Shown: positions 5,113 to 54,408, numbered from the stretch's first letter. The stretch is 64,000 nucleotides of DNA from Histomonas meleagridis 2922-C6/04-290x (GCA_020184695.1 JAANOX010000144.1:62001-126000), one strand, 5' to 3'. The notes: generated from the sequence alone by a model not told the origin. Program-made: numbers and translations.

Positions 5113-5133
5113 TAAAAAATATCAACTCATTGT

Positions 5134-5586
5134 TTATTTTGGATTAAGTTTATTTGCTAATTCTTTATAGTCAACAAGTCCATTACTGGTATCTAATGAA
5201 CCAAGAATTTCATCAATAAGCTCTTTAGAAAGAGGATTGTTTATGTTGGAAAGTACTTGGTTAACAAGATCAACTGACACTTTCCCGTCATGGTCAGTAT
5301 CAAAAGCAGCAAATGCCCGTGCTAATTCTTCTTGACTATCAGAATAACGAAGATAATAATATAATATCCTAATTAAATCAATAACATCGAATTTCTGTTC
5401 TCCTTGCCTAAATTCTCTGAAAACTATATTGTTTAAATCTTCAGATGATGTATTAATTTTAAGCAATTTAAAAACTTTTTTGATATCTTTCAAAGCTAAA
5501 TACCCATCTCCATCTTTGTCAGTTTTCTGGAAGGCCTTTTGGAATGTTTTTAGCTGCTTATCAGAGAAACAATCGCACACAGTCAT
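5134..5586 (-). CDS. Calmodulin-like EF-hand protein
   Basis: 150 aa with EF loops DKDGDGYLALKD and DTDHDGKVSVDL plus two degenerate loops. Confidence 0.85.
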   Translation of the reverse strand: MTVCDCFSDKQLKTFQKAFQKTDKDGDGYLALKDIKKVFKLLKINTSSEDLNNIVFREFRQGEQKFDVIDLIRILYYYLRYSDSQEELARAFAAFDTDHDGKVSVDLVNQVLSNINNPLSKELIDEILGSLDTSNGLVDYKELANKLNPK

Positions 5587-6211
5587 TGAGAATTAATTAT
5601 ATATAAACGTATGTCATTCAATTTAAATGAAGTGATTTAACGTGCTCCATAAAAAGCCAAATTTTAAACTGTTCATTAGTCTGCATGGAACACACTTTAA
5701 TTTCATTTAACAAAAATATATATTTTCCCATTCATTAATATTCAGTTGAAATTCAGTAAATGTGCTATGATTACCTTTGGCTTCTTTAAAGAAAAATATA
5801 TATCACAATTTTGTGATATTTATATATATTTTTATGTTTTGTTAAAATATATTTACCAAACCAAAGGATATCTTGAATGATATTATTGACATAAAGTTTT
5901 AAATTAATTGAGAATTTTTTTTTTTTGTAAAGCTATTCCAAGATTGTAAAAATTTAACAATAGATTTCAAGAAATTCTCAGCCTGTTTGAACTAAGTGAT
6001 GTCACCAGAATAAAAATGTTTAAAACTGTTGCGATAATTTTTTTTCAGAGCCAGAAAACACACAGCATGATATCGACCTACAGAAAATTTCAATGCAATT
6101 TCAATTAACCCGTATCCCTTAATCAAAAAGGTCAAAACCGATGTATCCAACAGAAAAGTGGATCGTTCTATTAAAAATGATTTTATAACGAATAATTGAT
6201 ACAAATTTACT

Positions 6212-6217
6212 TCACTT
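6212..6217 (+). promoter_or_regulatory. Initiator (Inr)-like element
   Basis: TCACTT ending 5 nt before the ADH ATG, matching the trichomonad Inr consensus TCA(T/C)T(T/A). Confidence 0.55.
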
Positions 6218-6221
6218 TATA

Positions 6222-7313: not shown

Positions 7314-7814
7314 AAATAAAGAAGAAATAAGTTCGAAAATTCTTCTTTTTTGAAATTTATATAATCAAAGTAATAGTTAAAAGTTATATTTGACGATTCA
7401 TTAAACAATTATGTTTCACCTTGTAGTGGACATTAATAGAATGAATATATATTTTGTTGTGATTGTAATTAGTAGTTAAAATCTAGAATAATACCATTAA
7501 TAACAAGAGATAATTTTATTTTTATATTTATTAAAAAAAAAAATACAAAGTATCATAGCAATTCTCAATAATATTGATTCTCAAAAACATTCATGTAAAA
7601 GGAAATTCATTGGATTATCGATTGTTTTCTTTATAAACGAAATAATATTAACATTTATTTATTTCTTTTTCATTTTGCATCCAAACAACATTATGTAGTC
7701 CAGTTTGCACTTTGCGATAAAGTTCATATCGTCGAAAGTTGCAATTGACAAATGAAAACATTAAAATTATAACGTAAAACATCATTTTATTAACATCATA
7801 TAAATAATATCTAT

Positions 7815-10316
7815 TTAAAGCACATAATCGTTTGGTACCACTATAGTGAAAGGCGCGTGATCCATTTCCACAATTTCTTCGACATTTTCCATGTTTTCGC
7901 TTTCGATTGTTTCCACGCCCAATTTGATTTTGAATGTTTGTTGTTCTTTTTGCTTAATTTCTATTTCTGCGAACTTTGGCTTCTTCTCCAAGAAGAACAA
8001 CGCGTTTGTAACTGTGCGCGACAGTGCGCATGGAATACCCTCTGACTCGCACTGGATGCTGTCGTTTTCGTCGCTAAAGAATTCGATGTTTTCGATTGTG
8101 ATATTAATGTTAGAACTTTTCTTGACAAATGCTTTCAGTTGTGATATCATGGAACGCTCACTAAACAGAAGCTTTAGATCCAAAAAGTCAGCAACTATGA
8201 AGTCAATTGACTTCGAAACTGTTATGTGATGAACAGATCCTTTGACTAACATATTGCCAGAATGATATGGCTGAATAGGAACATTCATAATATATTGGCC
8301 GGACTCGATTTTCCCGAACTCAAAGGATTCGTTGGGCTTGATCATGTTGTTTTGGGAATCAATTAAAGATGCGGTTTCAAATGATACTCCACTAATAGAT
8401 AACCTTAAGGATTTAACTGTGCGTACAAAGTCGAATAAAATGGTAAATGGCTGCCATTGTTTGGGTAAAAAGAAGTTTGGCGTGATAAGTTTAAATGAAA
8501 ATGGTGGTGGAGATTCTTTAATAGTAATAAGTTGTTGAGGTGAAGGAAGTGGTGACTTAATGACAATATTGTTGGAACTCATTCGGATACAATGTGGAAG
8601 ATAATTACCAGATTTCTTAAATGAGCCTATAGCCTTAAATTTTTTCCCTTTAGAAATGATTTGACTTCCACACTCTAAGTATTCGTAATCTCCAGTTTCT
8701 AAAGATATGAAAACAATATCAAATTTAGGAACAGTTACTTTCGATTTAAAGTGACATTTCAGGTGAACGTTAATTTCTATTTTCTTACCCTTAACGTACT
8801 CATTTGAATCGATTTTGGTCGTTATATCTATCGGATAATTCAAATCTATTGAACTTTCGGTATAATCAGAAAACAATTGTGATAAAACATTAGCAGCAAA
8901 TTTATGATACGAATGTAAATTTTCATCTGATAAAATTTGTAGTGATAAATTAATTTTATTTTCAGCATTTAAATTTGAAATTATAGATTTTGATATTTTC
9001 TTAATTAAGTTACAATTTTTATATTTTATGAACAATTTAATGAATTCCAATTTATAATTATTTTTATCTTCGTGATCATAATTAATATAATTCTGCATTA
9101 TAATTGCTGCTTTTCTATTAAATCCATTATTTAAACATAAGTCAATTAGTTTTAATAAAATTGATTTCATTTCAAGTTCGAATTTTTTGTCAGAAGAAAT
9201 TTTCTTTATTATCGAATTGTAATTACTGTTCTCTTTTGCGGTATTTCCTATATCCAATTGTCTTTTAACTGATTCCAATTGTATACAATATATTTCGAGT
9301 AAATTTATTTCATTCTTAATGATTTCATAATCGTTTTTCTTATTATATTTCTTACATTCTTTTATCAATTGTTGTAATGCTGTTGTAAACCACAAATTGT
9401 ATTGGAATTCGGACATTATAATGTTTTGCTTGATGAGCATCGATATATTAAAGAGAAATCGAGTTGAATATTGTACAGCTTTAATAAAATCATTCGAATC
9501 GATATACGACTGAAGTTTCCACTTGTATAAAAAGTAACGAATGTTATATTCACATTTGGAATTAAGAATAAAGTCGTCCGTAAATTGATCAATCCCTTTG
9601 GAAAAACTAAAAGAATATGTAAGTGAATTATTGTCAACAAAGTCTTCAAAGACATTGCGGTGATTCTCTATAAGTTCTTCTGTGTATGATACAATTGTAA
9701 CATATTCAACTGTTAATGATAACCGATTATAGATCTTGATAAGACGTAATGAGTTTTGAAAAGTAGAAAGTGTAATTTCTGTTTGCAAATTTGGACTTAA
9801 GGCTTTGATGCGCTTATGGAAAATGCTGATTATTTGTGAAATTAAAACTGGCCATATCTTGCGCATATCAGCTTTCTTAGGATTGCCTTGGCCTTTTATG
9901 GAAAGAACTTGTAGATTGGGAATATGTGATTGGATATGTTGAACTAAAGAGCTGGATTGCACAAAAAGAGTCTTGCTTTTAAGCTTTTTGGGATCAAATA
10001 TAAAAATTGCTTGAATCTGTATATGAGGCCTTGAGTAATTTTGATTAAAGGTTTCGATTTCTTTCATGTGATTACGAGTAAAATCTCCTTTACTGGAACA
10101 TAAAAAAAAGTTTAATATAATATAGGGAGAAAATGCTGTGTCATCAAGATTTTGTGGTTGTTGAACAAGCTCAATTTTTGGATTAAATTGAAACGATTGT
10201 TTTGGGCTACTTTCAAGTAAACCTGAGATTTCTTTTGGCTTGGAAAAGTTCATTACTTTAGTTATGCCTGATGAATATTCGGATGGAGCAACAACATAAA
10301 TATGAGGTTCAAACAT
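7815..10316 (-). CDS. TRAPPC10/Trs130-like large TRAPP subunit
   Basis: Helical N-half with YNIRYFLYKWKLQ...NLWFTTALQQL resembles the TRAPPC10 FRxYLFxRQ...W pattern; C-half is beta-rich and Ig-like. First ATG is at 10316. Confidence 0.5.
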   Translation of the reverse strand: MFEPHIYVVAPSEYSSGITKVMNFSKPKEISGLLESSPKQSFQFNPKIELVQQPQNLDDTAFSPYIILNFFLCSSKGDFTRNHMKEIETFNQNYSRPHIQIQAIFIFDPKKLKSKTLFVQSSSLVQHIQSHIPNLQVLSIKGQGNPKKADMRKIWPVLISQIISIFHKRIKALSPNLQTEITLSTFQNSLRLIKIYNRLSLTVEYVTIVSYTEELIENHRNVFEDFVDNNSLTYSFSFSKGIDQFTDDFILNSKCEYNIRYFLYKWKLQSYIDSNDFIKAVQYSTRFLFNISMLIKQNIIMSEFQYNLWFTTALQQLIKECKKYNKKNDYEIIKNEINLLEIYCIQLESVKRQLDIGNTAKENSNYNSIIKKISSDKKFELEMKSILLKLIDLCLNNGFNRKAAIIMQNYINYDHEDKNNYKLEFIKLFIKYKNCNLIKKISKSIISNLNAENKINLSLQILSDENLHSYHKFAANVLSQLFSDYTESSIDLNYPIDITTKIDSNEYVKGKKIEINVHLKCHFKSKVTVPKFDIVFISLETGDYEYLECGSQIISKGKKFKAIGSFKKSGNYLPHCIRMSSNNIVIKSPLPSPQQLITIKESPPPFSFKLITPNFFLPKQWQPFTILFDFVRTVKSLRLSISGVSFETASLIDSQNNMIKPNESFEFGKIESGQYIMNVPIQPYHSGNMLVKGSVHHITVSKSIDFIVADFLDLKLLFSERSMISQLKAFVKKSSNINITIENIEFFSDENDSIQCESEGIPCALSRTVTNALFFLEKKPKFAEIEIKQKEQQTFKIKLGVETIESENMENVEEIVEMDHAPFTIVVPNDYVL

Positions 10317-11348
10317 TTGCCTGTTAAAAAACCGTTTACTTCTACAATTGAAAGAGCGCAAAAATGCAGTTTTTCCGGGTTAATGCGATTTTTATAACTT
10401 CCCTTTTAAGGAAATATTTTATGTTTTTTCAACCACATGAATAATGTTTCAGAACAAAATGTGATAATATGGAAAAATTAGATCTACATTGAAATCATTA
10501 TATAAGAAGGAATTCTAAAAATAAAAAAATCTACAGTACCTTAATTTTACATAACATCTGACAACAATTTGTATTCATGACATTATGATATGTATAATCG
10601 TTGATTAAATTTTTTTGGAAAATTCCAATTTTCTTCAAAACGTTAGCATGATATTATATTAAATTTAAAGTTATAATGTAATATATACTATAGTGTTATT
10701 TTACAATAAAACTAAATAAAAATTTCGTGTATTTTTAGAAATCTACCAAATTTTTCATTTACATAACCAAAATATTTTATTGAATTAAAAACAACCAAAA
10801 AAATAACGAAAGGCTCAATACTTTTTGGTAACGAAAATATTTCATATAGATCTCGACAACAAGAAATGAATTTTAAATTTTCAAATTTGTCGAGTCCAAA
10901 AAGACGTTAAGTCACTTGACTTTACTATCATTTTAATGGGCCATTTACACACAGAAAATTGAGAGCATATCAATAAAATTCTTAAGAGATTTTAAGTCGC
11001 ACGATTAATCGTAAAAGTGCTTTTTTTCACGGTGTTTTAATCGTTTTAAACTCAAAAAGTGAGATCCCGCCAAAATTTTCACTCAAATTGACACACGTCT
11101 TTATCATTTCCTGACAAATAAGCTCTCAAAGGAATAACACTGTTGTTCATTTATCTATAAGAAATCTTTCATTATTAAAAAAATGAGTACACGGTGAATT
11201 TTTATGGATAATATAGAACATTCACACGAAAACGAAGGAAAATTTCCATTGACAAGAAGTTGTTTACACTATTCAATATCATCAAAGTTGTTATCGTCAT
11301 TCAAATTTCAAAGCGTTCTATCGGCTTTCATCATTCTAAACTTACGAT

Positions 11349-12943
11349 ATGAACGAAAGAACACACGAAGTTGGCGGCTACATCCTCGGAAGGACACTTG
11401 GAAGTGGAACAACAGGAAAAGTGAAGCTTGCTATCAATAAGGAAACAAACAAACAAGTTGCAGTTAAGATTATCAGAAAAGCAAGTTTTGATATCAAGCC
11501 TGATCTAGAGCGAAAGATTCATCGTGAGGTAGCATTGATGCGCCTTTTAAACCATCCACATCTCCTCAAGCTTGTCGAAGTTTGTGAATCTCCACATCAT
11601 TTATACATATTTATTGAATATGCACCTCATGGAGAACTCTTTGACTATTTAGTTAAAAGGCGGTTCCTTAACCCACCAGAAGCAATGATGTTTTTCAGAG
11701 AAATCATTTATGGTTTAGATTATCTTCATAAGCATGGTATCTGCCACAGAGACCTAAAACCAGAAAACATTCTTCTTGACGAGTTTGATCACGTTAAGAT
11801 AGCAGATTTTGGATTTGCTCGATGGATGCGATCAAATATTGCCGAGACATCATGTGGTTCACCACATTATGCCGCACCAGAAGTCATCCGCGGAGAGCCG
11901 TATGATGGGCGTGGAGCTGATGTATGGAGTTGCGGTGTAATTTTATATGCTTTACTTGCAGTATGTTTTTAGCGTTTAAATAGCTTCAGCTTCGTTAAGC
12001 GAAGCTTGTGAACGCGTTTATTTTGACTAACACATAGGGAAGACTTCCTTTTGATGATGATTCAATTCGCAATTTACTTGCCAAAGTCAAACTCGGCCAC
12101 TACAAAATGCCCAATTTCTTACCAGAAATCCAAGATCTTATTTCTCAGATGCTTACTGTTGATGTAAATCATCGTATCAAAATTGATCAAATCAAAACTC
12201 ACCCAGCCTTTTTAATGGATCTTCCATCCACCTACACAGTACCCACACCATTACCTATCATTAGTATGTCCGAACCGATTGATTCCAGTTTAATCGATAA
12301 AACAATAATCAATATCCTTCGTTGCATCGGCTACAACTCTGATGAAGAAGCCATGAAGGAACTTCTCTGTTCCGGCCATACCAGTGCCAAAGTCTTCTAT
12401 CAAATGTACAAGCGAAATGAATCATTAGATTCCTTACCATGGTCAGACGATGAAGACGTACCCGCAGACTATGGCATCCAACCCGAGTCTGGCGTCTTTC
12501 TTATGTCACCACGACAATTTGGTCCATTACATGCAACTAGTGATCAATTCCATCGTCGCACACAAGTTGGCTCCATTGGAAGCTTCCAATCGCCGCAGTC
12601 ACTCGCGCAGCGTCCAAATTGGGCTGGCGACTTCTCTCCGTACACGGCCGTTAACTACGAGCAGCGGTTAACTGACATCGAACTTCGGCCCGAGGAGCTC
12701 ATGGACCTGTTCCAGAACCTCCTCAACAGGCTGCACTTTAGGTGGTTCCATCCCGACGACTTGTGCCTCATTGCAAGGCAATTGGTGCCCGATTTGCTGG
12801 TGACGATAACCGCTTCGTTTGAGGCAATGAACATGTTACAAGTCGTGGTGTCACTGGTACATGGAGAAATTGATACGTTCGATTTGCTGATTACTGAAAT
12901 GGGCAAAGCAATTGATGAGAGATTGCAAATTATTAGGCAATAA
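11349..12943 (+). CDS. CAMK/AMPK-related (BRSK/Gin4-like) Ser/Thr kinase; exons 11349-11960 and 12038-12943, about 505 aa
   Basis: Motifs GSGTTGKV, VAVK, HRDLKPEN, DFG and CGSPHYAAPE. Splicing restores LYALLA|GRLPFDDDSIRNLLAKVK in frame. Confidence 0.93.
11961..12037 (+). other. Spliceosomal intron, 77 nt, phase 0
   Basis: 5' GTATGT and 3' ACTAACACATAG match the parabasalid fused branch/3' splice motif. Removal joins the two kinase ORFs. Confidence 0.93.
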
Positions 12944-37230: not shown

Positions 37231-38964
37231 TTATTTTGTGCATAATGCCTCGAAGAAGTCGAATTTCTCAATTTCCTCATCTCCGTCATCAATCTCTTCG
37301 TCGTCAGGCAGCGGTACCTTTTCGCATAGCCACAACGCGATGCTTCCCACAGTTTCCACGTCCATTTCGCTCACTCTTTTTGGGAATGCGTCCATCATTG
37401 CCGTTAGCGACGTATCCTTTTCCAACGTCAACTTCTCGAAGCACGCGATTATCATTGCGCACGTGAAGTAGCACAGCCACTTGTCCGGCTTTAGTGAGCA
37501 GCTAAACTTAAGCCAAACGCTCCACACGTCAGCGTACGTTCTCTTGAACATCAGCAAGAAATCGGAATAGCACCATAGCAGGTCTTGCATACCTCTATTC
37601 CTCATCCAAATCGCGGCGACTGGCGATACAGATGATAACAAATGTATAACAGTTGCGGCCCTTTTCTTGCAGCATTCAGTGACGTCCGCAAGTAATTCCA
37701 ATTGTTTAGTCTTTGTTAACATTCGTTGGAAACACCAAAAAATGATATATAGAACATTACTACAATCAATGATTTCCCCACTTTCGTTTATGGGCTCACT
37801 ATCATCATTCCATAATGGAATATATGATAACATTATCGGAACAAAAAGATCATTCATCCCTTGCAAATAACCAAGTTCTGGATCATATTGTGTTGAAACA
37901 TGTAAAAGTTCAGCTAAGATCTTCGGACCTGTTCCTTTAAGGTTCTTAAAGGATGAAAGTCCTCGATCTGTACGCGCAACATCGTGTGAGATGACCCGAT
38001 AATCGTCAGTTGTCTTTTTGCTGTTTTGGATTTGTATCGGAAGTTTCGATTCGACTTGTGACTTCAAAATAGAAAATTCGTTTTGAAGGTCTGCGCGTAT
38101 TTTTTCACGTTCTTCGGAAGTGGAATCATATGAATAGACCCCAAAGACAAATGGTAACAGATCAGGAAGCGCAGAGGGCTCTATTCCGGAATGATATGCG
38201 CGATGTAAAAAAAGCTCGGGATCAATAAGACGGCCATTGGAATCAAATAAAGTTGGAATTTCGGATTTGGTGATTTGGGTATACTGCGGAACTTTTGATA
38301 AGTAATCATTGATTTCATTCATAACTAATTCATGGCAGGCTCGTGCAGCGGATGCTAATGGAAAGTCGGTATCAAGAGGTACGGTACCACTGGAATCTAA
38401 ATATATCATGAGCTCGGTGAAAAAGTGATGAACATCTAACCAGAAATTAGAAAGTGTGGTATATGGTTTGTAATTAAGTTTAAGTGGAGGTGGAGTATAT
38501 GAATAAACACCTTCGCGACATCGCTTATAAAATTCAAGGGAATATGAAGGTTCTTTACATGGAACTGCAATACCATTAAGAATAAGTTGTTCAACTAGCT
38601 GAACTACCGATATAAACTCTGATTCTGGTATGAGGTAAGTATGGTTTCCTTCATTATTTCGGAATATTGTGAGAGTTAATGGATTTTCACTGAACTGAAT
38701 GAAAAAAACTTCCTTACAATCAAATATGAAGGGACCATTTTTAGCCCATTGATCAGTGGTGGGAATTTTTATTGGTTGAAAAATTGATTCTCCTGTAGAT
38801 GGATCAAATGGTGACCAAATTAATTGAAAGTTATTGCTTTGACGTATTAGACACAAGAAACCAGAAACCCTTTTGTTCATAATAGTCGTGTCAACAGCCA
38901 TTTCAATTGTGCTTAGGAAAAAAGTTCTTTTTGTTGACATTTCAAAAATAATTAACGGTCGCAT
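37231..38964 (-). CDS. TBC-domain RabGAP (Gyp7/TBC1D15-17-like)
   Basis: ISHDVART (Arg finger), GYLQGMNDL (Gln finger) and FLLMFKR. Confidence 0.9.
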   Translation of the reverse strand: MRPLIIFEMSTKRTFFLSTIEMAVDTTIMNKRVSGFLCLIRQSNNFQLIWSPFDPSTGESIFQPIKIPTTDQWAKNGPFIFDCKEVFFIQFSENPLTLTIFRNNEGNHTYLIPESEFISVVQLVEQLILNGIAVPCKEPSYSLEFYKRCREGVYSYTPPPLKLNYKPYTTLSNFWLDVHHFFTELMIYLDSSGTVPLDTDFPLASAARACHELVMNEINDYLSKVPQYTQITKSEIPTLFDSNGRLIDPELFLHRAYHSGIEPSALPDLLPFVFGVYSYDSTSEEREKIRADLQNEFSILKSQVESKLPIQIQNSKKTTDDYRVISHDVARTDRGLSSFKNLKGTGPKILAELLHVSTQYDPELGYLQGMNDLFVPIMLSYIPLWNDDSEPINESGEIIDCSNVLYIIFWCFQRMLTKTKQLELLADVTECCKKRAATVIHLLSSVSPVAAIWMRNRGMQDLLWCYSDFLLMFKRTYADVWSVWLKFSCSLKPDKWLCYFTCAMIIACFEKLTLEKDTSLTAMMDAFPKRVSEMDVETVGSIALWLCEKVPLPDDEEIDDGDEEIEKFDFFEALCTK

Positions 38965-40320: not shown

Positions 40321-41548
40321 TCAATCAATTTTTTTTAAAAGAACATCCGTTTTCAACCCTTCCTTTTCTAAGAAGGCTAAAATTTCGAAAATGCTATGTT
40401 TTATACATTTTTTACCAAGAAAAAAAATGCTATCCTCAACTGAATTGCTAGTAAAATTATTTAGATCAGGAGTAATATAAAATTGATTGAAGTGAAGATA
40501 TGTTAGAGAAATTAAAACCAGATGCATTAGAATTAGATGTGTTAGGCAAATGAAAATCATTGGTATTTCTAGAATTAGAAATATATGGAACATAAGATTG
40601 AAGGTGATAAGAATAATCTGGACCACAGCCACTTGAGGATAAATGAATTTTTTTAACTCCTTCAAATTTTCCGATTTTATTATCATAAAAATAATGAAAG
40701 ATCTCATTTCGATGGAATTTAATTGCTGTTTCATATGCTTTTGAAAATGACGAATGATTTTGTTCACATAAATGAATGATTTCTTCATTTCCGCCTGCAA
40801 TTGCATATTTACCTGTGTCTTCTACATTAGCACCATTCAGAAGTAAATATTTAAAACATTTAACTGCTGAAAAAAATGCTGCATAATCAATTAATGTAAC
40901 TTTCCAATTGTTAATAAATGAACATCTTTCATAAAGTGATGGTTCAATTATTTGATTAAAATCAAAATAATTTCGTGATGATATTTCTTGAAGTTTTTCT
41001 ATTTCATCATTCCGAATTATTTTTGATATTTCATTTGGATTATGTCCTTCTCTAATTAATTTCTAATGAAGTGCTCAATCATTTTTTGAAAGTTCTTTTA
41101 TATTTCTAGTAAATTCAGAATAAAAAGGGACTTTAATACCAAATCCATTTCTCATTTTGAAATGATGATCAAAATAAAACGTCCCTGTATTTTCAACAAA
41201 GCTTACGTCAATTAATCCACTACTAACTTCTCAAGAAGGTAGTATGATTCTTGTTGATGCAACATTAGTAAATATTTGGAAAAAGTATTTATAAGATTGG
41301 GAACATTCTTCTTAATTTCATCTTCCTTTAATTGCAAATTGTATAAATATTTAACACAAATATGAATCAATGTTTATATGAGAAATAAACGAAGAATAAA
41401 CTAATCGAGAAATAATTAGATTAAATGTATTTAAAAAATTGTTTTCTTTAAGTATGTTTAAGGTCGATTGAATTGATAATTTAATATTATCATAATTTAA
41501 TTTAAAAACAATTTGCTCCAACATTCGAAGAGTTTCGAGTCTATTCAT
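40321..41548 (-). pseudogene. DUF3447-type ankyrin-family pseudogene, paralog of 19091-20254
   Basis: Colinear with the paralog (TLIDYAAFFSAVKCFKYLLLNG, YAIAGGNEEIIHL). TGA at 41075-41077 and TAG at 41063-41065 replace the paralog's W and Q; frameshifts near 41355, 41220 and about 40620. Confidence 0.8.
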
Positions 41549-41834
41549 TTTTATAATTCCGATAGAAAAGTGACTTATTCAGGCAAACGACAGCAAATTT
41601 TTTTCATTTTAAAAAATATTTAAACATATTTCTTAATTAGTAATGTATATTTAGTGTCCGCTCATATCAATTAGAATATCTAAATTAAAAAAATTTTGAA
41701 AAAACATTTCAATAAAAGTTAAAATTTGGAAATTCAATTTCAATAAAGATTTTGAAAAAACAATTATTACAGCTAAAGATTTATTACATGAAAATGATAT
41801 CATTTTCATACAAATTACAAAACTTTTTCCAACT

Positions 41835-44800
41835 TTATTTTCCTATCTTCGTAAAAATCTGAGGGAATAATTCCTTTTGTTTTCTTGTGTAATTAATTAG
41901 TATTTCCTTCCATTGCTGATTATACTTACCCTCATTTATTAATATTTTCCTCAAGTCGAATACATCAGCAGCTAATTCAGACCTATTTGGTAAATTCGAA
42001 GCTATTTTATTTCTTCCTCCAAAAGTTCTAGTTTTTCTATGTAATTCTTTTGGTACATTTATAGCATAAGCATCGTTTGGATTTATTCCTAATTTTTGCA
42101 TATGTTTTTTAGATGTCATATGATGTGCTTCCATTCCAACAATTCCATTTTCTTTGTTCCATTTTTTTAACTTTGCGTAAGTATCAAATTTTCCTTCACC
42201 TTTTAGTAATGTATTATTAACAGGTTTTACATTTTTAGTTATTTGAGTAAATTTCATATTTTTAATAGTCGGCTTTAAAAAATTACATTTAGTAATTCCT
42301 ATAATTTCAATTATAGATAATAATGTTTCAGCACTTTCGATTAAGTTATTATTTCGATCTGATATTTCTCTATTAATTATTGATTCTTTGATTTCATTTC
42401 GATTAAACTCATCAATTAATGGATCATCTAAATACATATAAAGATAACCAATTTCATATGCTTTTTGTATATGGTCATTAATATGATGACAAAAATCTCC
42501 AATTGTATTCATAATTTCAGTGAAGTAATTCTTTAATTTTGGTTTTAATGTTTGACTGAACTTTTTATATTCTTCAATTACCTTATTTTGTTCATAATGT
42601 GTATTTTTTAGCATTTGTTCGAATTCTTTTATATGACAACATTTTAAGATTTCTGTTTGTATATGTGTTTCATTCATATTATCTGAAACTTTTACTTCTT
42701 TTGTATTTTCAACAATTTCTTTAACTTCATTTGATACTTTTTTCTCTGTTTCTTGAAGGCGTTTAATGAAAGTCGAAACTTTATCAACAATTTCTTTGGT
42801 GATTTCATTAGCTTCTTCAATAGCATTTTCACTATTAACACCTTCTAATACTCTTTGAGTTATATATTTTTGTTGAACTTCTTTAAATTCATTAACTTGT
42901 CCAATCATTGTTACAAGTTCACCAATACATGGATTAATAACTTTTTGATGTTTTTCTGTTTTTTCATCAACTTTTTCATCGATACGTTTTCCAGATATTA
43001 CACCATCACTAATAATTGCTCCTTTATTATATAGAAGTTCACCGACTTTCAAATAGAATTTTTCGATTCCTATAAGTTGTGATACTTTATTAATTCTTTC
43101 TTGTAAACATTCTTCATCAGCTATACGAATTGTTGGGACAACTCCTAACTTTGGATTTAATATAGAATTATCTACTTTAACTCCTTGAATTAAACTATTT
43201 ATAGATGATAAACTACTTGAAATTTGTGTATTATTACTTTCGCTTTTGAACAAATCTTTAATAGTTTCAATAGTCAAATTTCCTGAAACTAACATTTCAA
43301 TTACATTAGCACGTATTGTTGACCCTCTAAATATGGCATCATTACATCGAATAAATAAATCTCCTGCTTCAATAATCATATTAGAATGATTAGTTTGATC
43401 AAAACTAACTTCTGATTCAAATACTGATATATTTGGTAATGTTCCAATAGTCGGAGAGATACAAGCTTCTATAAAAGCTATTGGTGATAAACTTATATTA
43501 AATCCTTTTGTTTTAGAACTTTGTTCAATAGTATGTTTTGGAGAATCTGAAGTTATTTTTCCTGTTTCAATACTTGCCTTATTTACTTTCCATATTCCTT
43601 CAAGATGTGTACGATCATTGTTAATTTTTAGAATTCCAACTTCGACTTGACTTTGTATTGGTTGACTTTCTTTTCGTTGAATAGTTGTCGTAGAATTATT
43701 ATATACAAAACCAGTAACAAATCTATTTAAAAAGATTTGTGATATTGCTATTATCGGATTTGGATTTTTCGCAATGTTTGCTAATGTTAAAGCATGTGTT
43801 AATGTTTGTGCTCCAGTACCAATAATGTTCATAGCTGTTGGAATTGCATCTCCAAAACTTATAATGTTTTCAACACCTTTTAATGCTTCAATAAATGGAT
43901 CACCTTTAATTTTAGGTGCAAAAAATCCTGAAGAATGTTGAACAATATTACTCTTACTATGTAAATATGCTGCTTTTTCAATCAAATTTTTCGTAATAGA
44001 CATATCAAGAGCTTTAATAATTGTGCCTTCAAAAACACATGTCCCTTTACCTATAGATTCAAAATGATCAGTAATTATTTGTGCCCTTTCAATCAAATCT
44101 CGAGTTTCATAAATGTTTCTAGAAGATTTTCCAAGACCAAATAGTCCACCATTTTTATATGTCATACTGAAGTTATTTTGTGAACCATATGCAGGAATGA
44201 TTGAAAAATCGCCATCATTTGGGTTACTAATAGTATTTGCAATTATTTCAGCACCAACTAAAGAAGTATCAGCTGATTTAAATATAATTGTTCCTGATGT
44301 TTTAATATTAGCTCCTTTAGGTGTGTTAAAGTTCATGCAAGTAAATGTCCTTTTAGCCCAATGTGCAATTTCACTTTTTTCATATGCAGGATTAATAATA
44401 TGTTTTTGTGCTTCAAAAGTTATTCCTCCATTTCCAGCTTCTAAATTAGTACCATGTTGATCTATAATTCCTTTAGGTGCATTTAATTGTATATTATCTT
44501 TTGCTTTTAGAGATGATGTTATTGTTTTTTGTTCTCTAACCCAATTTTGTTTACCAAAAGTAAGAGTTGGATCTAACTCCATTTCTAAATCAATAATATT
44601 ACCATTAGAACTTGTTATTTGTATATTTTTAGCTTTAATATTTGCACCTTCAAGTGTTACTCCTTTTTTACCTGATGCAATAAAAGTACCAGGAACTTCA
44701 ATATCGACAGGATCAACTCCTGTTTTATAATGAGAATCAGAATATGTGAATTCAGATGCAATTCGAATTTCTTTTTCTGATTCTAATGTAAAATCTATAC

Positions 44801-47800
44801 TTTCTAAATTGATTTTTCCAGGTGCTAAATGTATATTTTCTAGATTATGAATAGAAATTAATTGTTGAGCTTTAATAATATTTTTCAACTTAGAAATAGT
44901 GTTACATATTAAATAAGGATCAAATAATGGAACTAACATTTTCTCTCCTTCTGCTTCTATTTCGACATCTGGATTTGAACTTTTATCAAACAAAATTGCT
45001 GGATTTCCATCAGGTAATACAATGTTTTTCATACCTCTAAATAAATTAGATATTTTCGATCCTTGTTTTTTTAATTTTCCTGTTAAATCAATTGTTAATA
45101 ATATATTTCTACCTTCAAGAGGTGTTAATATTAAAGTAGTCAAATGACTTAATATACCTGATTGAAGAGTTGGAATGAAATATTTTGTTTCAGGTTTATA
45201 ACTAATGAAACCAGATTCAGAAGTTTTATATATTGAAAATCCTTCATTATATTGTTTTGAAGAAATTGGTACTAATCCAGTTGGAGAAGTAAATCTCATT
45301 CCTTGTTCGGAAAACGTTTTTTCATCTATAAGAAAACCAATTTGATTTCCTAACTTTCGAAGATTAATAAGTTGTATTACTTGACCACTTGGCATTAAAA
45401 CCGGTTCAATAATTCCTTTAATTATCATTTCTTCGATTAATTTAATATATATATTTTCGGATTGTATTGCTAATTGTTCTAATGCAGCTTTCCGTAATTC
45501 AATATTTACATTTCCTTTAGCTATTAATAATCCTCGATCAGCATGATTAATTGACTTTTGTAAAACTCCTTGAATATAAATATTTTCATTCGAAACTATA
45601 GTTCCTAAATATGTATCACTTTTCATACATATTTTTAAATCACCATAAGAAAATATATATCCAGGATATTTCGATTCTGTAGAATATTGAACTTGAGATT
45701 GATATCCAGTGATAGTTTTATAAGTTTTTTTATGTTCTCCACCAAGATATAAACCTCCATGTTTGGCCTCACCTGCTTTATAAATACCTGCCGGTGGACA
45801 AAAGCTAGCTCTACTACAAGGAACATATATTCGATTATGTCCAGAACGACTAAGTCCCATAAATTCTTGAAGTTTTGTTGGATAATTATTCATAAAATCA
45901 TCGATAGTCATTCTTCTTCCATTATAACATACATCTCCAAAACAAACACCTTTTCTATTATATCTAACTAAACCTAAAATGGATAATGACTCAGTTGTTA
46001 TATGTTCAATTGGGGCATTAGGATTAACACCACTAATTAATTGCCTTCCTTTTCTATATCCATTTTTTAATATTGTCCCATTTATTGTTGTTGATCCTCT
46101 ACTATAAATTAAGCCACATTCATTCCGTACTTCTCCTGATGATTTAATATTTAAATCATCTGAAGAATTTATTATTCCAAAACTATTATTAAATGAACCT
46201 GAAATAATATTCATAAAAGTACCACATGTTATTACTCCAGCTAAGGATAAATTTGGATAATATACATCTCTATATATTGTTTGAGATTGTCTATTTAATC
46301 TCGAATTGGTCCATGTTGAATAATATATTATCTCTGGTTTATTATGTTCAATTCTTCCTCCACCTGTATTTATAAATCTTCCTTTTGCTTCTATATTAAT
46401 ATCTCCATATGTTTGAAGGCGGCCACTTGTATTTGTAAATTCATTTGTTTCAATATTAATAAAATGTTTTGCTGATATAGTTTTTGTATTATTGAATTTT
46501 TGGGTTTTTATTGTTAATGATATTACTGTTAAATCTGAATTTATTTCTAATGATGGCGCTTCAATATATAAATTAACATTCCAATTGATTGAATTTATTA
46601 ATTTAACTCCATTTTTTGCAATAATTTCCAAATTCTTCCCTCCACTAAGTATTGGCTTAAAATTATCAAAATTTAATGAAGTTTCAGATATTTCAAATGA
46701 TATTTCTTCACAAACAAATTTTCCAAGTTTTGGTGGGATGTAAAGGAAGTCCATTTTTTGAAGAGAATATATAATTCCATTATTTATAAAATCACATGAA
46801 ATATTACATTTGTTTTCAAATTTCAAAATAGATTTCTCACCTCCAATATAGTGTTTTCCTATAAACAAATCACGTTCATTATAATTTTTATAATCATCTT
46901 TATGTCTAAATAAAATTTTCCCATTATTTATCAAATCTGTTCTTATATGAACTCGATCTAACAAATGTAAGTCAGCATTTATTTCATTATTAATAACTTC
47001 TAAATTCATTAATGGCGTTTTAAAAGTTGTTATTCCAGAATTTTTTAATATTTTAAGTCCGTTGAATTTTGTATTTTCATCAGCTAAAAATTTTGCACCA
47101 TAATAAACATTTAATTCTTTTAAATTCGAAAAATCTGCATTTGCACATACTGAAAAAATTGCACCAGAATATAAATTTAATTTCGTAAGATTAGGTAAAG
47201 AAGCAGAAATATCAATTTTTCCTTTTAATCCAAAAAGATCATTAATTTTAGTTAAAATGGAATTTGTTTTAATTTGTAAATGACCTGTTATACTATTTTT
47301 AATTATAAATAATTTGGGAATCTTTGATAATATACATGTAATACCTTCATTTTCTATTTGTGTTAATTCAGGTACTTCAGATGTTTGATTTATTAATAAT
47401 TTTGCTTCTGAAAATATTTTTATTTTTGTTAATTGTGGTAATTTACTATTGATTTGTAAATGTTTTTTAATATTAATTGTTTTAGAATTAAAAGTTCCGT
47501 TTTCTATACATCCTATAATTGCATTACTTATAATTTCAGATGTTTTAATTATACCATTTGATGAATTTTGTATCATTGTTTGAGGCCCAATTAATTCTAA
47601 TTCGTGTTCAAATGTTGTTAATTGAGAAATATTAAGAAATATTCCATTGATAATTCCTTTTTGAAAGTTTATATTTGCTTTATTTGTTATTTTATTACCT
47701 TTACCATAAAACACTTGTCCTGCAACGATTCCATTTATTAAATTAATTTCTTTAGAATGGAATTTGACATTTGAAGCAATAATTTCACCTTCATTTTGTA

Positions 47801-48821
47801 CATAATCATCAGAAATTATATTTATTTCTCCAGTTTTGCCATTTATTTTACCATGATTTATTATATCATATCCAACAATATCTAAATTATTTTCTAATTC
47901 TAACGTTCCTTGATTATTAAATAATTCTGATGTTATTAATTTTAAAATTGATCCTTTGATAATACCTTCGTTAGAAATTGTGGATGTTCCTATGATTAAC
48001 TTTTTTGAGATTTCTATTATACCTTTGTTATAAAAGTATAATATATCTTTAAAAATGGTATTATCCGAAGTTTTAATTGTTCCAATATTAAATAAATATC
48101 CATTATTTAAATCAATATTATTAATATTAAGTTTCCCAAAGTTAAACAAAAACACATTATCTAACATTATTTTTTCGATTGTTAGTTCAGCTTCTTGTTC
48201 AATAAATAAAGTATTAATTAATTCTGGAGATTTTATATTTCCTTTAAAAACTAATGATTTAATTGTCGACTTCGTCTTTCCAATAAGAAGTACAGATGAT
48301 GCTTCAATTTCAATATGTGTTAAATTTGTATTATATAAAATTACTTGTTTTGGAGCATTAATTTGAATGGATTTTTTTAATTGCGTGTCCAAAACAATAT
48401 TTCCATCGTGTGAAATTAACAATTCTCCAAATTCTGGAATAAATAAACTCCATCCTCTTGATAATTCGGTTTCAATATTTTGTTCACTTAATTTCTTATT
48501 TTCATTGCTTTCTGGTGTTTGACTAGAATCAGTTTTTAATTGGGTTAATTGGTATGCTATTTGTGCTTGAACTTTTTGCAAAATTTCATATAAATGAATA
48601 TTATTTGCTTTTTGTTCACTAATAGTATAAATAAATGGAGTTACAACTTGTTCAAATACAGTTTTATACATGTGAGTAAGTTGTCCATCTTGAGAAATAT
48701 CAATTATTTTCAATACTTCTATTATATATCCTTCCATTATTTCCTGTGTTTCCTCATTTAAAACATTTGATGGTTTAATATTAATGCGATATTCAGGAAT
48801 GTGTTCATCCAGTTCCACCAT
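41835..48821 (-). CDS. Filamentous haemagglutinin/CdiA-like polymorphic toxin with a C-terminal His-rich (HNH/EndoVII-like) nuclease domain
   Basis: 2328-aa uninterrupted ORF with many N-x-G-x-I beta-helix repeats and FHA-2-like segments (SSLKAKDNIQLNAPKGIIDQHGTNLEAG, VSGNLTIETIKD). C-terminus has EAHHMTS...AINVPKELHRKTRTFGG. Confidence 0.75.
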   Translation of the reverse strand: MVELDEHIPEYRINIKPSNVLNEETQEIMEGYIIEVLKIIDISQDGQLTHMYKTVFEQVVTPFIYTISEQKANNIHLYEILQKVQAQIAYQLTQLKTDSSQTPESNENKKLSEQNIETELSRGWSLFIPEFGELLISHDGNIVLDTQLKKSIQINAPKQVILYNTNLTHIEIEASSVLLIGKTKSTIKSLVFKGNIKSPELINTLFIEQEAELTIEKIMLDNVFLFNFGKLNINNIDLNNGYLFNIGTIKTSDNTIFKDILYFYNKGIIEISKKLIIGTSTISNEGIIKGSILKLITSELFNNQGTLELENNLDIVGYDIINHGKINGKTGEINIISDDYVQNEGEIIASNVKFHSKEINLINGIVAGQVFYGKGNKITNKANINFQKGIINGIFLNISQLTTFEHELELIGPQTMIQNSSNGIIKTSEIISNAIIGCIENGTFNSKTINIKKHLQINSKLPQLTKIKIFSEAKLLINQTSEVPELTQIENEGITCILSKIPKLFIIKNSITGHLQIKTNSILTKINDLFGLKGKIDISASLPNLTKLNLYSGAIFSVCANADFSNLKELNVYYGAKFLADENTKFNGLKILKNSGITTFKTPLMNLEVINNEINADLHLLDRVHIRTDLINNGKILFRHKDDYKNYNERDLFIGKHYIGGEKSILKFENKCNISCDFINNGIIYSLQKMDFLYIPPKLGKFVCEEISFEISETSLNFDNFKPILSGGKNLEIIAKNGVKLINSINWNVNLYIEAPSLEINSDLTVISLTIKTQKFNNTKTISAKHFINIETNEFTNTSGRLQTYGDINIEAKGRFINTGGGRIEHNKPEIIYYSTWTNSRLNRQSQTIYRDVYYPNLSLAGVITCGTFMNIISGSFNNSFGIINSSDDLNIKSSGEVRNECGLIYSRGSTTINGTILKNGYRKGRQLISGVNPNAPIEHITTESLSILGLVRYNRKGVCFGDVCYNGRRMTIDDFMNNYPTKLQEFMGLSRSGHNRIYVPCSRASFCPPAGIYKAGEAKHGGLYLGGEHKKTYKTITGYQSQVQYSTESKYPGYIFSYGDLKICMKSDTYLGTIVSNENIYIQGVLQKSINHADRGLLIAKGNVNIELRKAALEQLAIQSENIYIKLIEEMIIKGIIEPVLMPSGQVIQLINLRKLGNQIGFLIDEKTFSEQGMRFTSPTGLVPISSKQYNEGFSIYKTSESGFISYKPETKYFIPTLQSGILSHLTTLILTPLEGRNILLTIDLTGKLKKQGSKISNLFRGMKNIVLPDGNPAILFDKSSNPDVEIEAEGEKMLVPLFDPYLICNTISKLKNIIKAQQLISIHNLENIHLAPGKINLESIDFTLESEKEIRIASEFTYSDSHYKTGVDPVDIEVPGTFIASGKKGVTLEGANIKAKNIQITSSNGNIIDLEMELDPTLTFGKQNWVREQKTITSSLKAKDNIQLNAPKGIIDQHGTNLEAGNGGITFEAQKHIINPAYEKSEIAHWAKRTFTCMNFNTPKGANIKTSGTIIFKSADTSLVGAEIIANTISNPNDGDFSIIPAYGSQNNFSMTYKNGGLFGLGKSSRNIYETRDLIERAQIITDHFESIGKGTCVFEGTIIKALDMSITKNLIEKAAYLHSKSNIVQHSSGFFAPKIKGDPFIEALKGVENIISFGDAIPTAMNIIGTGAQTLTHALTLANIAKNPNPIIAISQIFLNRFVTGFVYNNSTTTIQRKESQPIQSQVEVGILKINNDRTHLEGIWKVNKASIETGKITSDSPKHTIEQSSKTKGFNISLSPIAFIEACISPTIGTLPNISVFESEVSFDQTNHSNMIIEAGDLFIRCNDAIFRGSTIRANVIEMLVSGNLTIETIKDLFKSESNNTQISSSLSSINSLIQGVKVDNSILNPKLGVVPTIRIADEECLQERINKVSQLIGIEKFYLKVGELLYNKGAIISDGVISGKRIDEKVDEKTEKHQKVINPCIGELVTMIGQVNEFKEVQQKYITQRVLEGVNSENAIEEANEITKEIVDKVSTFIKRLQETEKKVSNEVKEIVENTKEVKVSDNMNETHIQTEILKCCHIKEFEQMLKNTHYEQNKVIEEYKKFSQTLKPKLKNYFTEIMNTIGDFCHHINDHIQKAYEIGYLYMYLDDPLIDEFNRNEIKESIINREISDRNNNLIESAETLLSIIEIIGITKCNFLKPTIKNMKFTQITKNVKPVNNTLLKGEGKFDTYAKLKKWNKENGIVGMEAHHMTSKKHMQKLGINPNDAYAINVPKELHRKTRTFGGRNKIASNLPNRSELAADVFDLRKILINEGKYNQQWKEILINYTRKQKELFPQIFTKIGK

Positions 48822-50707: not shown

Positions 50708-52159
50708 TTATCCTTTAGAATCGTTTAATTTTATTATGTGGTTACATTTCTGTTGTCGAATTTTGTTTACAAACAACTGAATAATATCTGCATCTTTGTT
50801 TTCGGATGCTATTATAAGCGCTGTTTTATATATTTATAAGTAATTCCAAATGTTTATGTGAAATATCATATTTTTTGAATATACTTTATATAAAACAAAG
50901 AAATATCTTTAGCATCCATATCAATATTATCTTGTTCAAGAAGTAATTCAACTATTTCTATATCATTATTTTTTGATGCTAAAATAAGTGCTGTTTCAAA
51001 TAATTTAAATAATTTCCAAATATTATATTGAAATAATAAATTATTCAAGTAAATATCAAACAAAACAAAGAAATATCTTTAGCATTAATATCAATTCCTT
51101 CTTTTTCAAGAAGTAATTTAACTATTTCTGTATAACCTTTTTTAGATGCTCTAATAAGTGCTGTTTTAAATATTTTAAATAATTTCCAAATATTATTTTG
51201 AAATATTAAATTATTCAAATAAATATTAAATAAAACAAAGAAATATCTTTAGCATTAATATCAATTCCTTCTTGTTCAAGAAGTAATTTAACTATTTCTG
51301 TATAACCTTTTTTAGATGCCCACATAAGTGATGTCCATAATATTTTAAATAATTTCCAAATATTATTTTGAAATATAAAATTATTAAAATAAATATTAAA
51401 TAAAATAAATAAATATCTTTAGCGTTAATATCAATTCCTTCTTGTTCAAGAAGTAATTTAACTATTTCTGTATAACCATCTCTAGATGCATACATAAGTG
51501 CTGTAGCAAATAATTTAAATAATTTCCAAATATTATATCGAAATAATAAATTATTAAAATAAATATCAAACAAAACAAATAAATATCTTTAGAATTAATA
51601 TCAATTCCTTCTTGATCAAGAAGTAATTTAACAATTTCTGTATGATTATTATAAGATGCTCCCATAAGAGCTGTATTAAATATTTTAAATAATTTCCAAA
51701 AATTATTTTGAAATAATAATTATTTAAAATAAATAATAAATAAAACAAATAAATATCTTTAGAATTAATATCAATTCCTTCTTGTTCAAGAAGTAATTTA
51801 ACAATTTCTGTATGACCATTTCTAGATGCAGATATAAGTGATGTAAAAAATAATTTAAATAATTTTTGAAATATTATTTTGAAACACTAAATTATTCAAA
51901 TAAATTTTAAATAAAACAAATAAATATCTTTAGCATTAATATCAATTCCTTCTTGTTCAAGAAGAACTTTTGTGACTTCAGAATGACCTTGGCGTGTTGC
52001 CCAATGAAGTGCTGTTTCATTAATTTTAGATGAATTCCAAAAATAAATATTAAACATTCAATCTTCATGAGAAACATATTTACCATTAATATCAAATATT
52101 TTTTGTTCGATTTGCCATTTAATAAATGATACAAATTCTTTTTGGTATTGAGAAAGCAT
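50708..52159 (-). CDS. Second interrupted ankyrin locus: 8 modules with AT-rich spacers and the same C-terminal cap
   Basis: Modules start at 52015, 51844, 51674, 51504, 51334, 51164, 50994 and 50824 (periods 171, then 170 six times). Cap ...IIKLNDSKG* matches locus 1 ...IIKLKDSQG*. Confidence 0.65.
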
Positions 52160-53193: not shown

Positions 53194-54408
53194 TTACGAT
53201 ATTGGTAAGTTGTAATCACAAGTTGAAATGTTTGGCATGTTCATGACTGATTTTAGAACCGTTTGATAATTTGGAAAATTATCATTAGGGAACACCTTCT
53301 TGAAACCATTGCCGATTTCGTTTTTAGCTCTAAGCTCATTTATTTGTTGTATTGTATCCTTGTGATTTTCCATGAATTTTTTGAATTCTTTTGCATCTGT
53401 TGGAAATTCCGTTGTTTCCTTAAGCCTTTGCAATGGCATCAATGGCGCTGCGATCTTTAGTGCATCCATTAACATGTTCTGTTTTAATGTATGTGAATTC
53501 ATAGTATTACATTTTAACGATGGTCGGAAATTAATCTCTAAAACATATGGCTTAAGTTGCTTGTCAAGCAATACATCAAAGCCAACAATTTGGAAACATC
53601 GTGAATACCCAAGATTAGGACATTCTTCATCTTCGAATTTTGACAGGAAACCGTAGGCCGATATGACCGATAGAACGATAGCCCTGTCAATCCTTTCCCA
53701 AAGAGCATCAATGTCATAACCCATTTGTTTAAGCTTTTCAAAAACATCAGACAACATTTGGGTCATTTTGTCGGGAATGGCATCTGGGTTTTTGATGTTA
53801 ACTGCGGTATTTGTAAGTAAAGAGAATTTAGAATTGGTATCAACAGTTTCACTACAAAAGCGTGCTACACCGCCACGATACACGTAGATTGTAAGTGGCT
53901 TAACTGATAAAATAAGAACATATATTCGAAGATCAAACTTTTTGTTATCAATTGTAAAAGAATCTATGTACTCCTGAATTACAGCTAAATGCCGTGATTT
54001 TGGAGTTTCCTTTTCGGAATTTATTACCTTTATTCCATGACCAAGTGCACCTTTATCTGGTTTATAAATGTATTTTTTTGGTGATTCTTTGTATGCCTTA
54101 TGAAATTCATTTCTTTCTAGAGGTAAAATAAATGATTTTGGGATAAAATCATATAAATTCGGAAAATATTTTGCTGTCCTACAGATAAGTCTTACATATG
54201 GTGCCTTGCGACACATTGTTCGAGCCCATGGGATTCTATTTATAACTTGCCATGGCATCATTTGCTGAAAATAATCAACCTTCATTGTATCTGTCCAAAC
54301 CAACATTGCATTTGGATTAGCTTTTGTGTACTCAATTCCGGAAAGACGTAATGCCTGTTTCACAACAGCAAACAAAACTTTTCCGTTTGTTGCTTGGAGT
54401 TTTTCCAT
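53194..54408 (-). CDS. Tubulin-tyrosine-ligase-like (TTLL) protein
   Basis: KPDKGALGHGI, IQEYI, KKFDLRIY, FQIVGFDVLLD and LEINFRPSL. Confidence 0.92.
   Translation of the reverse strand: MEKLQATNGKVLFAVVKQALRLSGIEYTKANPNAMLVWTDTMKVDYFQQMMPWQVINRIPWARTMCRKAPYVRLICRTAKYFPNLYDFIPKSFILPLERNEFHKAYKESPKKYIYKPDKGALGHGIKVINSEKETPKSRHLAVIQEYIDSFTIDNKKFDLRIYVLILSVKPLTIYVYRGGVARFCSETVDTNSKFSLLTNTAVNIKNPDAIPDKMTQMLSDVFEKLKQMGYDIDALWERIDRAIVLSVISAYGFLSKFEDEECPNLGYSRCFQIVGFDVLLDKQLKPYVLEINFRPSLKCNTMNSHTLKQNMLMDALKIAAPLMPLQRLKETTEFPTDAKEFKKFMENHKDTIQQINELRAKNEIGNGFKKVFPNDNFPNYQTVLKSVMNMPNISTCDYNLPIS

Follow-up and report, generated by a model that had tools for sequence, protein, structure and literature searches.

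A polymorphic toxin gene of CdiA/TpsA-like type within the protist Histomonas meleagridis' nuclear genome

CdiA proteins such as E. coli EC869 CdiA and Burkholderia BcpA are giant beta-helical proteins with FHA-2 (PF13332) repeats that begin with a two-partner secretion (TPS) fold, end in a swappable toxin behind a conserved junction, and are encoded ahead of an immunity gene. Here, we describe a gene of this general build in a 64,000-nucleotide stretch of the genome of the protist Histomonas meleagridis 2922-C6/04-290x (GCA_020184695.1 JAANOX010000144.1:62001-126000, i.e., C144:62001-126000 in an assembly of 281 contigs and 43,133,364 bp), which we call the window and whose positions are counted from its first letter. 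The open reading frame (ORF) at 41835-48821 on the minus strand had been read in an initial annotation, made from the sequence alone, as a bacterial CdiA/TpsA-type toxin embedded in a protist chromosome, and this reading holds given its match to PF13332, eukaryotic flanks, host-like codon usage, presence on two contigs, and recovery in an independent study. We consider it probable that the gene was acquired laterally from a Holosporales-like donor, has long been resident, and is transcribed; it may serve as an antibacterial nuclease-tipped adhesin or toxin.

The Histomonas protein shares with CdiA the giant beta-helical form, the FHA-2 repeats, and the conserved junction followed by a swappable C-terminal toxin, and its modelled N-terminus resembles a TPS domain in fold. 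Its tip family is also found on a CdiA with DUF637 and PT-VENN domains, and the toxins of its bacterial relatives are followed by immunity genes, including CdiI behind EC869-type tips. Unlike CdiA, it is encoded in a eukaryotic nucleus without a signal peptide or a Pfam match to TPS, DUF637, or PT-VENN, and its junction reads V(I/F)NP instead of VENN; furthermore, the transporter CdiB/TpsB was not found even beside the bacterial relatives, and the Histomonas copy has no immunity gene. Because a signal peptide, a Pfam TPS domain, VENN/DUF637, and an adjacent immunity gene are all missing, we set the protein apart from canonical CdiA and file it as a variant of the bacterial CdiA-like polymorphic toxin family. 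Two hallmarks of polymorphic toxins are present, i.e., a constant scaffold with varying tips and the same tip on unrelated scaffolds, while an immunity gene directly downstream is found in the bacteria but not in Histomonas.

Bacterial warfare genes have been fixed and expressed in eukaryotic genomes before. The dae amidases of ticks are laterally acquired antibacterial effectors, and teneurins are animal proteins derived from YD/RHS polymorphic toxins that have kept the whole architecture including a nuclease-like tip. The NlpC/P60 and GH19 toolkit of Trichomonas likewise consists of laterally acquired antibacterial effectors (PMC10461829, PMC12612818). Unlike the Histomonas protein, which is a complete TpsA-type fibre plus toxin with no export signal, these are either membrane proteins or small enzymes that carry signal peptides and are secreted. 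Neither lateral transfer nor toxins come up in the genome paper (Palmieri et al. 2021), the Histomonas gene goes unlisted in both the Trichomonas toolkit paper and the polymorphic-toxin survey, and a literature search by accession found nothing on it.

Architecture of the protein and its toxin tip

The ATG-initiated ORF is a single intact frame of 2,328 codons, so that the roughly 7-kb intact ORF of the initial annotation stands. At its own base composition, a stop codon would be expected about once per 10 codons or ~220 times over 2,328 codons, and the chance of meeting none is ~1e-101; the remaining five frames of 41835-48821 contain 82 to 330 stops. An in-frame stop without any earlier ATG lies upstream of the start codon, the stop codon sits in TAAAG such that TAAA overlaps it, and the GC content of 26% is similar to that of adjacent sequence, all as expected from the earlier remarks on a stop within TAAA and on AT-richness shared with the neighbours. 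The gene is single-copy in the Histomonas genome, in which the ORF is the sole match to PF13332 (Fil_haemagg_2) and the tip has one copy only. Public databases contain a shorter gene model of 1,263 amino acids, GPJ56_005798 (KAH0790225.1, KAH0798666.1, and XP_067771297.1; two GenBank accessions and one RefSeq accession), which corresponds to window positions 42735-45860 on the minus strand. It begins at the internal Met988, matches residues 988-2028 identically, and then diverges; lacking the N-terminal 987 residues as well as the tip, it conceals both the TPS-like N-terminus and the toxin. The features of the locus are as follows:

41835..48821, minus strand: whole CdiA/TpsA-like polymorphic toxin ORF, 2,328 amino acids plus stop (ORF call, stop statistics, single-copy)
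47589..48809, minus strand: N-terminal cap and beta-helix with a predicted TPS-secretion-domain-like fold, residues 5-411 (AlphaFold2 model and PDB matches)
46212..47588, minus strand: beta-helical shaft with N-x-G turns, FHA-1-like, residues 412-870 (weak Fil_haemagg match; conserved with relatives; 11.6% Asn, 15.3% Ile)
44682..46211, minus strand: most conserved middle region, residues 871-1380 (27-57% identity per 100 residues to relatives P0001 and P0002; many invariant columns)
42972..44681, minus strand: FHA-2 (Fil_haemagg_2) repeat region, residues 1381-1950 (PF13332 match)
42918..42953, minus strand: pre-toxin junction V(I/F)NP...E, residues 1957-1968 (KHQKVINPCIGE; relatives diverge beyond)
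42231..42911, minus strand: Lys/Glu-rich linker, residues 1971-2197, variable between relatives (read as helical from composition)
41838..42230, minus strand: C-terminal toxin domain, residues 2198-2328, predicted TseN-like/HNH-type DNase (family search, AlphaFold2 model, match to 9j9w_B)
41764..41837, minus strand: stop codon in TAAA plus 71-nucleotide 3' end (stop context; RNA-like contigs from X3 and X7 reach as far as 41764)

Among Pfam models, PF13332 matched the ORF at 29.8 bits (cut-off 22) over residues ~1429-1477 and 1806-1865, confirming the FHA-2-like segments that had been noticed by eye, whereas PF05594 (Fil_haemagg) gave a weak, sub-threshold match in the first third of the ORF (17.3 bits against a cut-off of 21.5; E 0.0076) and neither a TPS model nor the DUF637/PT-VENN pre-toxin models PF04829 and PF04830 matched. 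The haemagglutinin-family profiles named in the initial annotation were therefore recovered in part, above the cut-off for Fil_haemagg_2, below it for Fil_haemagg, and with no match for DUF637. The beta-helical N-x-G repeats proposed there coincide with the asparagine-rich shaft. An AlphaFold2 (AF2) model of residues 1-430 is all-beta with a predicted local distance difference test score (pLDDT) of 87. Exhaustive structural comparison (VIA-align), from which the matches of this model and of the tip model came, ranked the secretion domain of HMW1 first (Z 22.2, root-mean-square deviation [rmsd] 2.6, 250 residues, over residues 5-411) and that of EtpA second (Z 21.7, over 5-407), followed by an autotransporter passenger (Z 20.9) and generic beta-helices (Z 13-18) that mostly aligned from residue 120-175 on; Foldseek found nothing significant for the N-terminal model. 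In its predicted fold, the N-terminus thus resembles a divergent TPS domain; the absence of such a domain, as first reported, is right for Pfam, while the modelled structure suggests one.

Identity to relatives lies at 40-55% (30-57% when taken per 100 residues) until about residue 2000 and at no more than 20% thereafter, a collapse that marks the discrete C-terminal module already suspected in the initial annotation. The lowest identity within the middle region falls on a Cys-containing insert at ~985-1020 that has no counterpart in the aligned bacterial relatives. At the junction, V1961, N1963, P1964, and E1968 are invariant in the alignment with relatives.

The tip was compared with two described groups of toxins. 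TseN is an antifungal effector that Acidovorax citrulli delivers by type VI secretion; its C-terminal part (PDB 9J9W) is an experimentally established DNase that requires His254 and is blocked by the immunity protein TsiN (PMC12574953). Tox-AHH and Tox-SHH are HNH/EndoVII nucleases that are found at the C-terminus of polymorphic toxins and carry an [AG]HH-type motif plus a downstream His (Zhang et al. 2012, PMC3482391). An exhaustive HMMER search with the last 179 residues of the Histomonas protein found 165 representative proteins at E <= 1e-3; among the best 150 of these, which are 72 to 2,063 amino acids long, the tip is placed at the C-terminal end or close to it. The scaffolds examined comprise RHS-repeat proteins, one protein each with DUF6443 and Fil_haemagg_2, and a fragment of a classical CdiA with DUF637 and PT-VENN. 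The family shows the motifs HHMPS ... (GG)RH..TRTYG ... PR.ELA.D, with EAHHM as the Histomonas version, and 21 of the 25 positions conserved in at least 80% of its members are retained in Histomonas, including the family-invariant His2234, His2261, and Thr2264 and the near-invariant His2233 (His2233-His2234 encoded at 42120-42125, His2261 at 42039-42041).

Neither the Histomonas tip nor any of 36 family members is matched by Pfam, including its AHH, SHH, and LHH models, and the group is an uncurated family of bacterial toxin tips. The shared [AG]HH-type motif with its downstream His and the C-terminal position on polymorphic toxins make it at best an uncurated sister family of Tox-AHH/Tox-SHH, from which the 0/36 matches to the AHH, SHH, and LHH models set it apart. 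The AF2 model of the tip (pLDDT 89.8) has a single strong structural match, TseN (9j9w_B; Z 11.2, rmsd 2.9 A, 115 of 131 residues), with the next match at Z 4.3. We take chain B of 9J9W to be the DNase and not the immunity protein because its three-strand-plus-helices topology fits the published description of the DNase. The tip shares these three strands and helices and a conserved His with TseN, but aligned identity is 18%, a sequence-level match is lacking, the comparison is one of fold, and TseN is cargo of a type VI secretion system whereas the Histomonas tip is mounted on a TpsA-like fibre. In the ESM Atlas, shape matches to SHH, AHH, and Pyocin_S tips (TM 0.67-0.73) and a language-model search pointed likewise to Tox-SHH, AHH, and S-pyocin tips, while sequence searches of the PDB with the C-terminal 250 amino acids and the tip profile as well as Foldseek with the tip model gave nothing or nothing significant, respectively. 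Judging by this predicted fold and the retained histidines, we read the tip as a putative His-dependent DNase.

Bacterial relatives, likely donor, and a second eukaryotic copy

A word-based search of 5.8 billion proteins recovered only ~10 relatives of the Histomonas protein. Its bacterial relatives are 38-46% identical to it (all those with genomic context are bacterial), carry a Sec signal peptide directly ahead of the conserved N-domain, and end in tips that are EC869-like, of the WHH/colicin DNase type, or AHH-like as in Histomonas. Tips of the Histomonas type are found in P0008 and P0009 (31% identity, E 1e-12). Small ORFs downstream of the bacterial toxin genes overlap the toxin stop: an overlapping 163-amino-acid ORF follows P0008 and P0009, and CdiI follows G028 and P0004. 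The full-length homologue in G028 is 38% identical to Histomonas residues 11-2041 and closely resembles the P0008 locus, with 98% identity of the upstream genes and 93% of the core, but has an EC869-like tip with CdiI. The pair G028/P0008 is a textbook case of tips being swapped at one locus, and such differing tips among close relatives confirm the swappable C-terminal toxin that had been postulated for the Histomonas gene. Another relative, P0001, is 96% identical to a fragment in G025.

The most likely donor is a Holosporales-like bacterium living inside protists. Next to P0008 lies a DNA glycosylase gene with 61% identity to that of a metagenome-assembled genome (MAG) titled Holosporaceae bacterium, and the donor order was assigned via this one MAG title. 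Of 58 species-representative genomes of the MAG's order (0.5-2.2 Mb), 16 matched the core alignment at E <= 1e-5 and ~11 at the stricter E <= 1e-20, compared with 2 of 351 genomes at E <= 1e-20 in an even sample across the class, so that the CdiA-like family appears to be common in Holosporales-order genomes. Holosporales are obligate associates of eukaryotes, mostly protists, and a review of the order does not mention this toxin family (PMC11909080). A metagenome scan added one further fragment only. A pattern-based contig scan with the core alignment came back blank although the family is present there, a blank that reflects the limit of the method.

In a tree of 16 sequences (1,847 columns, LG+G4), the Histomonas protein falls inside a clade with 98/98 support that also contains the groups G028/P0008/P0009 and G025/P0001 as well as further bacterial sequences from metagenomes. 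Because the deeper branches (G027, G051, G058, and P0004) are all bacterial, this nested position indicates transfer from a bacterium to the protist. In a smaller tree, Histomonas stands beside P0008/P0009, which share its tip type, with 84/99 support; the approximately unbiased (AU) test did not reject Histomonas as sister to the G028 clade (p = 0.18).

One relative belongs to another, unrelated eukaryote. P0003 (2,976 amino acids, 33-34% identical; L004 1140-10070, L004-L007) is encoded on very AT-rich contigs from at least 4 metagenome samples, has a GC content at third codon positions (GC3) of 0.155, and lies beside a kinesin-3 gene that shares 52-55% identity with its counterparts in early-diverging fungi and animals and only 44% with its best match in Histomonas. 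By these gene comparisons, its host is a eukaryote other than a parabasalid. P0003 has asparagine-rich inserts and lacks a signal peptide, in whose place the N-terminus is extended by 200 residues of low complexity. It pairs weakly with the bacterial P0007 and is grouped with Histomonas in 0-1% of bootstrap trees; a tree constrained to unite P0003 and Histomonas is worse by 17 log-likelihood units (p-AU 0.052). We therefore favour two independent captures, by Histomonas and by the host of P0003, as far as these trees can tell, and if the two did acquire the gene separately, this would be a case of convergent capture.

Several features of the bacterial loci deserve mention. Ahead of the toxin gene lie two conserved genes for proteins of 573-605 and 159 amino acids (L037 [G028:C23] 870-11578; L010 1301-11709). 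The larger gene starts with a hydrophobic stretch, neither matches Pfam, and the pair is 98% identical in two Holosporales-order strains (L037, L010) with different tips and immunity genes, making it a candidate export or accessory module replacing TpsB. The 573-amino-acid protein was also considered as TpsB itself and rejected, being not barrel-like and without a Pfam match, and no POTRA/ShlB gene lies in the flanks of the bacterial toxin loci. Some bacterial copies are interrupted, by one in-frame TAA in G028 (L037 7218-7220) and by an N-terminal part of 223-258 residues that forms a separate ORF at the P0008/P0009 loci (L008 about 7015-7031; L010 4868-5030), which may reflect assembly error or decay in endosymbiont genomes. 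A gene for a 1,289-amino-acid ankyrin-repeat protein (L008 1089-4958) adjoins the P0009 toxin locus, as fits a bacterium living in eukaryotic cells. Two further candidates were dismissed: P0160, on a 131-kb contig, is a clustering artefact unrelated to the family, and apparent tandem gene pairs of 578/205 and 577/206 amino acids are not related.

Residence in the Histomonas genome and transcription

The architecture and all close relatives of the toxin are bacterial, and a contaminant or chimeric assembly, in which the ORF of a culture bacterium had been wrongly joined to protist DNA, would account for both. The attenuated-strain assembly, however, was made from Nanopore and Illumina data of clonal cultures with E. 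coli as the sole bacterium, and contigs matching bacteria in their entirety were discarded (Palmieri et al. 2021). Contigs of DNA run X1 continue from the ORF through protist intergenic DNA, the public gene model exists under two GenBank accessions and on two contigs of which the longer spans 1.14 Mb, and the runs of an independent 2023 study also contain the toxin sequence. Homologues or remnants of bacterial neighbour genes were found neither in the window nor in the genome. Beyond its 26% GC, the gene has a GC3 of 0.106 compared with 0.33-0.35 in bacterial relatives, and its relative synonymous codon usage correlates with that of other window genes at r = 0.90 (0.70-0.90 for those genes among themselves); its codon usage is fully host-like. 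The lateral origin of the gene is thus well supported, as is its long residence in the nuclear genome, and the explanation by contamination is close to refuted.

The window contains eukaryotic genes for RabGAP-TBC, AAA ATPase, TLDc+B-box, tubulin-tyrosine ligase, VPS9, and BspA-type leucine-rich repeat proteins. The flanks had initially been described as ankyrin loci, but the closest intact neighbours are the RabGAP-TBC gene (37231-38964) and the tubulin-tyrosine-ligase gene (53194-54408); what stands of this description are ankyrin-repeat fragments at 50866-52057. Just upstream of the toxin gene on the minus strand, these fragments form a run of repeats (TAL..AS..G.TEIVKLLLEQEGIDINAKDI) split into short ORFs by frame-breaking spacers. 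Ankyrin repeats are the immunity proteins for some Tox-AHH tips in the polymorphic-toxin survey (PMC3482391), but since trichomonads have ankyrin genes in abundance, we treat the run as no more than a lead. On the other side, positions 41001-41068 reach a summed depth of ~126,000 in the DNA run (~600 beside) and 1,600-8,300 in RNA-like runs, and evidently belong to a very high-copy family; their translation resembles the N-terminal part of trichomonad ankyrin-family genes.

A run search found that four runs of the 2023 study, which is independent of the genome project, contain 67-78% of the stretch, and three of these four were compared with DNA run X1 over 41001-47000. RNA-like contigs cover the ORF with a depth of 28-51 near the 3' end and 5-10 further 5', and in two of the three runs (X3 and X7) they terminate at exactly 41764, i.e., 71 nucleotides beyond the stop. 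The intergenic stretch 41200-41760 is nearly empty in the RNA-like runs, whereas DNA run X1 is continuous there with a flat depth of ~600. The 3' bias, the end shortly past the stop, and the empty intergenic stretch form the pattern of poly(A)-selected RNA, so that the toxin gene is likely transcribed. All four read sets have A at position 42957 where the assembly has T, a synonymous difference in Thr1955; the DNA run with this A may be the assembly's own source.

Possible function and alternative explanations

The Histomonas copy has lost the Sec signal peptide but has retained the whole bacterial delivery scaffold, i.e., the TPS-like N-domain, the shaft, the middle region, the FHA-2 repeats, and the V(I/F)NP junction. 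On the reading that we prefer, the protein would be a nuclease-tipped adhesin or toxin that the parasite deploys against bacteria encountered as food, as competitors, or as intracellular invaders: its shaft and FHA-2 repeats would attach to the bacterial envelope and breach it, and the tip, once released at the junction, would degrade DNA. The parasite would come to no harm if the protein, at ~265 kDa and in the cytosol, were kept from its nuclear DNA, and the lack of an immunity gene might thereby be tolerated. The antibacterial role is inferred, as is the use against gut bacteria, competitors, or host cells that the initial annotation had proposed.

Several observations weigh against antibacterial deployment. 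No signal peptide was found, as first noted from the sequence and in line with the in-frame stop upstream: the ORF begins only 8 residues ahead of the conserved domain, and the maximum hydropathy in the first 60 residues is 0.66. There is also no transmembrane segment in the ORF, and TpsB (PF03865) was not found in the Histomonas genome or in five genomes of the donor order with a search that barely matched control genomes. Classical export and two-partner secretion are therefore unsupported, and the missing export signal argues against simple secretion. Bacterial CdiA is thought to require surface presentation via CdiB. No homologue of the bacterial 163-amino-acid immunity protein is present in the window or the Histomonas genome; a 161-amino-acid ORF at 40321-40806 was examined as a candidate and rejected, since it shows no similarity to that immunity protein's gene and seems to be open by chance. 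That the runs are RNA is a presumption, two proteomic supplements do not mention the toxin gene, and purifying selection is suggested by ORF integrity and codon amelioration within one Histomonas lineage.

The export problem would disappear if the protein acted inside the cell. CdiA-type toxins are made for docking onto and entering bacteria closely related to their producer, the donors live in the cytoplasm of protists, and both eukaryotic copies have lost the signal peptide and kept the rest; the protist may hence have turned an endosymbiont weapon against invading or resident bacteria of the donor lineage as a form of cytosolic, cell-autonomous immunity that would need no export signal. We consider this rather unlikely, and the same applies to the idea that the gene was domesticated purely as an adhesin or structural protein whose beta-helix binds bacteria or host tissue while the tip is a non-toxic passenger. 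Many TpsA proteins (FHA, HMW1, EtpA) are adhesins, two of which (HMW1 and EtpA) gave the N-terminus its best fold matches; conservation extends over the entire scaffold, and an adhesin would not require an immunity gene. However, an unused tip should have decayed over the time that complete codon amelioration took, yet it keeps 21 of its 25 conserved residues with all four motif positions (His2233, His2234, His2261, and Thr2264), and an adhesin, too, would need the export for which no signal peptide was found.

Decay is likewise the crux for the suggestion that the gene is a functionless relic of transfer, open and transcribed by chance or inertia without contributing to fitness. A single-copy gene without paralogues in the genome, with no export signal, partner, or immunity gene and no trace in the two proteomic supplements, would fit such a relic. 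Yet the fall of GC3 from ~0.34 to 0.11 implies very many substitutions, which left no stop where ~220 would be expected and spared conserved residues across all domains, and a second eukaryote keeps a comparable full-length copy (P0003); we therefore regard a mere relic as very improbable. An antibacterial nuclease-tipped adhesin or toxin of bacterial origin, as set out above, remains the reading that we prefer.

Eukaryotes are known to have taken up bacterial warfare genes for small enzymes and for isolated toxin domains, but we found no description of a complete and, as it seems, expressed TpsA/CdiA-type fibre with a nuclease tip in a protist nucleus in the literature that we searched. The step from endosymbiont to host would be a natural route for such a transfer, with a donor lineage that can be named, and a delivery machine without its bacterial secretion partner raises the testable question of what it is capable of. 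Histomonas needs bacteria for growth and causes blackhead disease in poultry, and this dependence on bacteria makes the gene a candidate factor in the interplay between parasite and bacteria.

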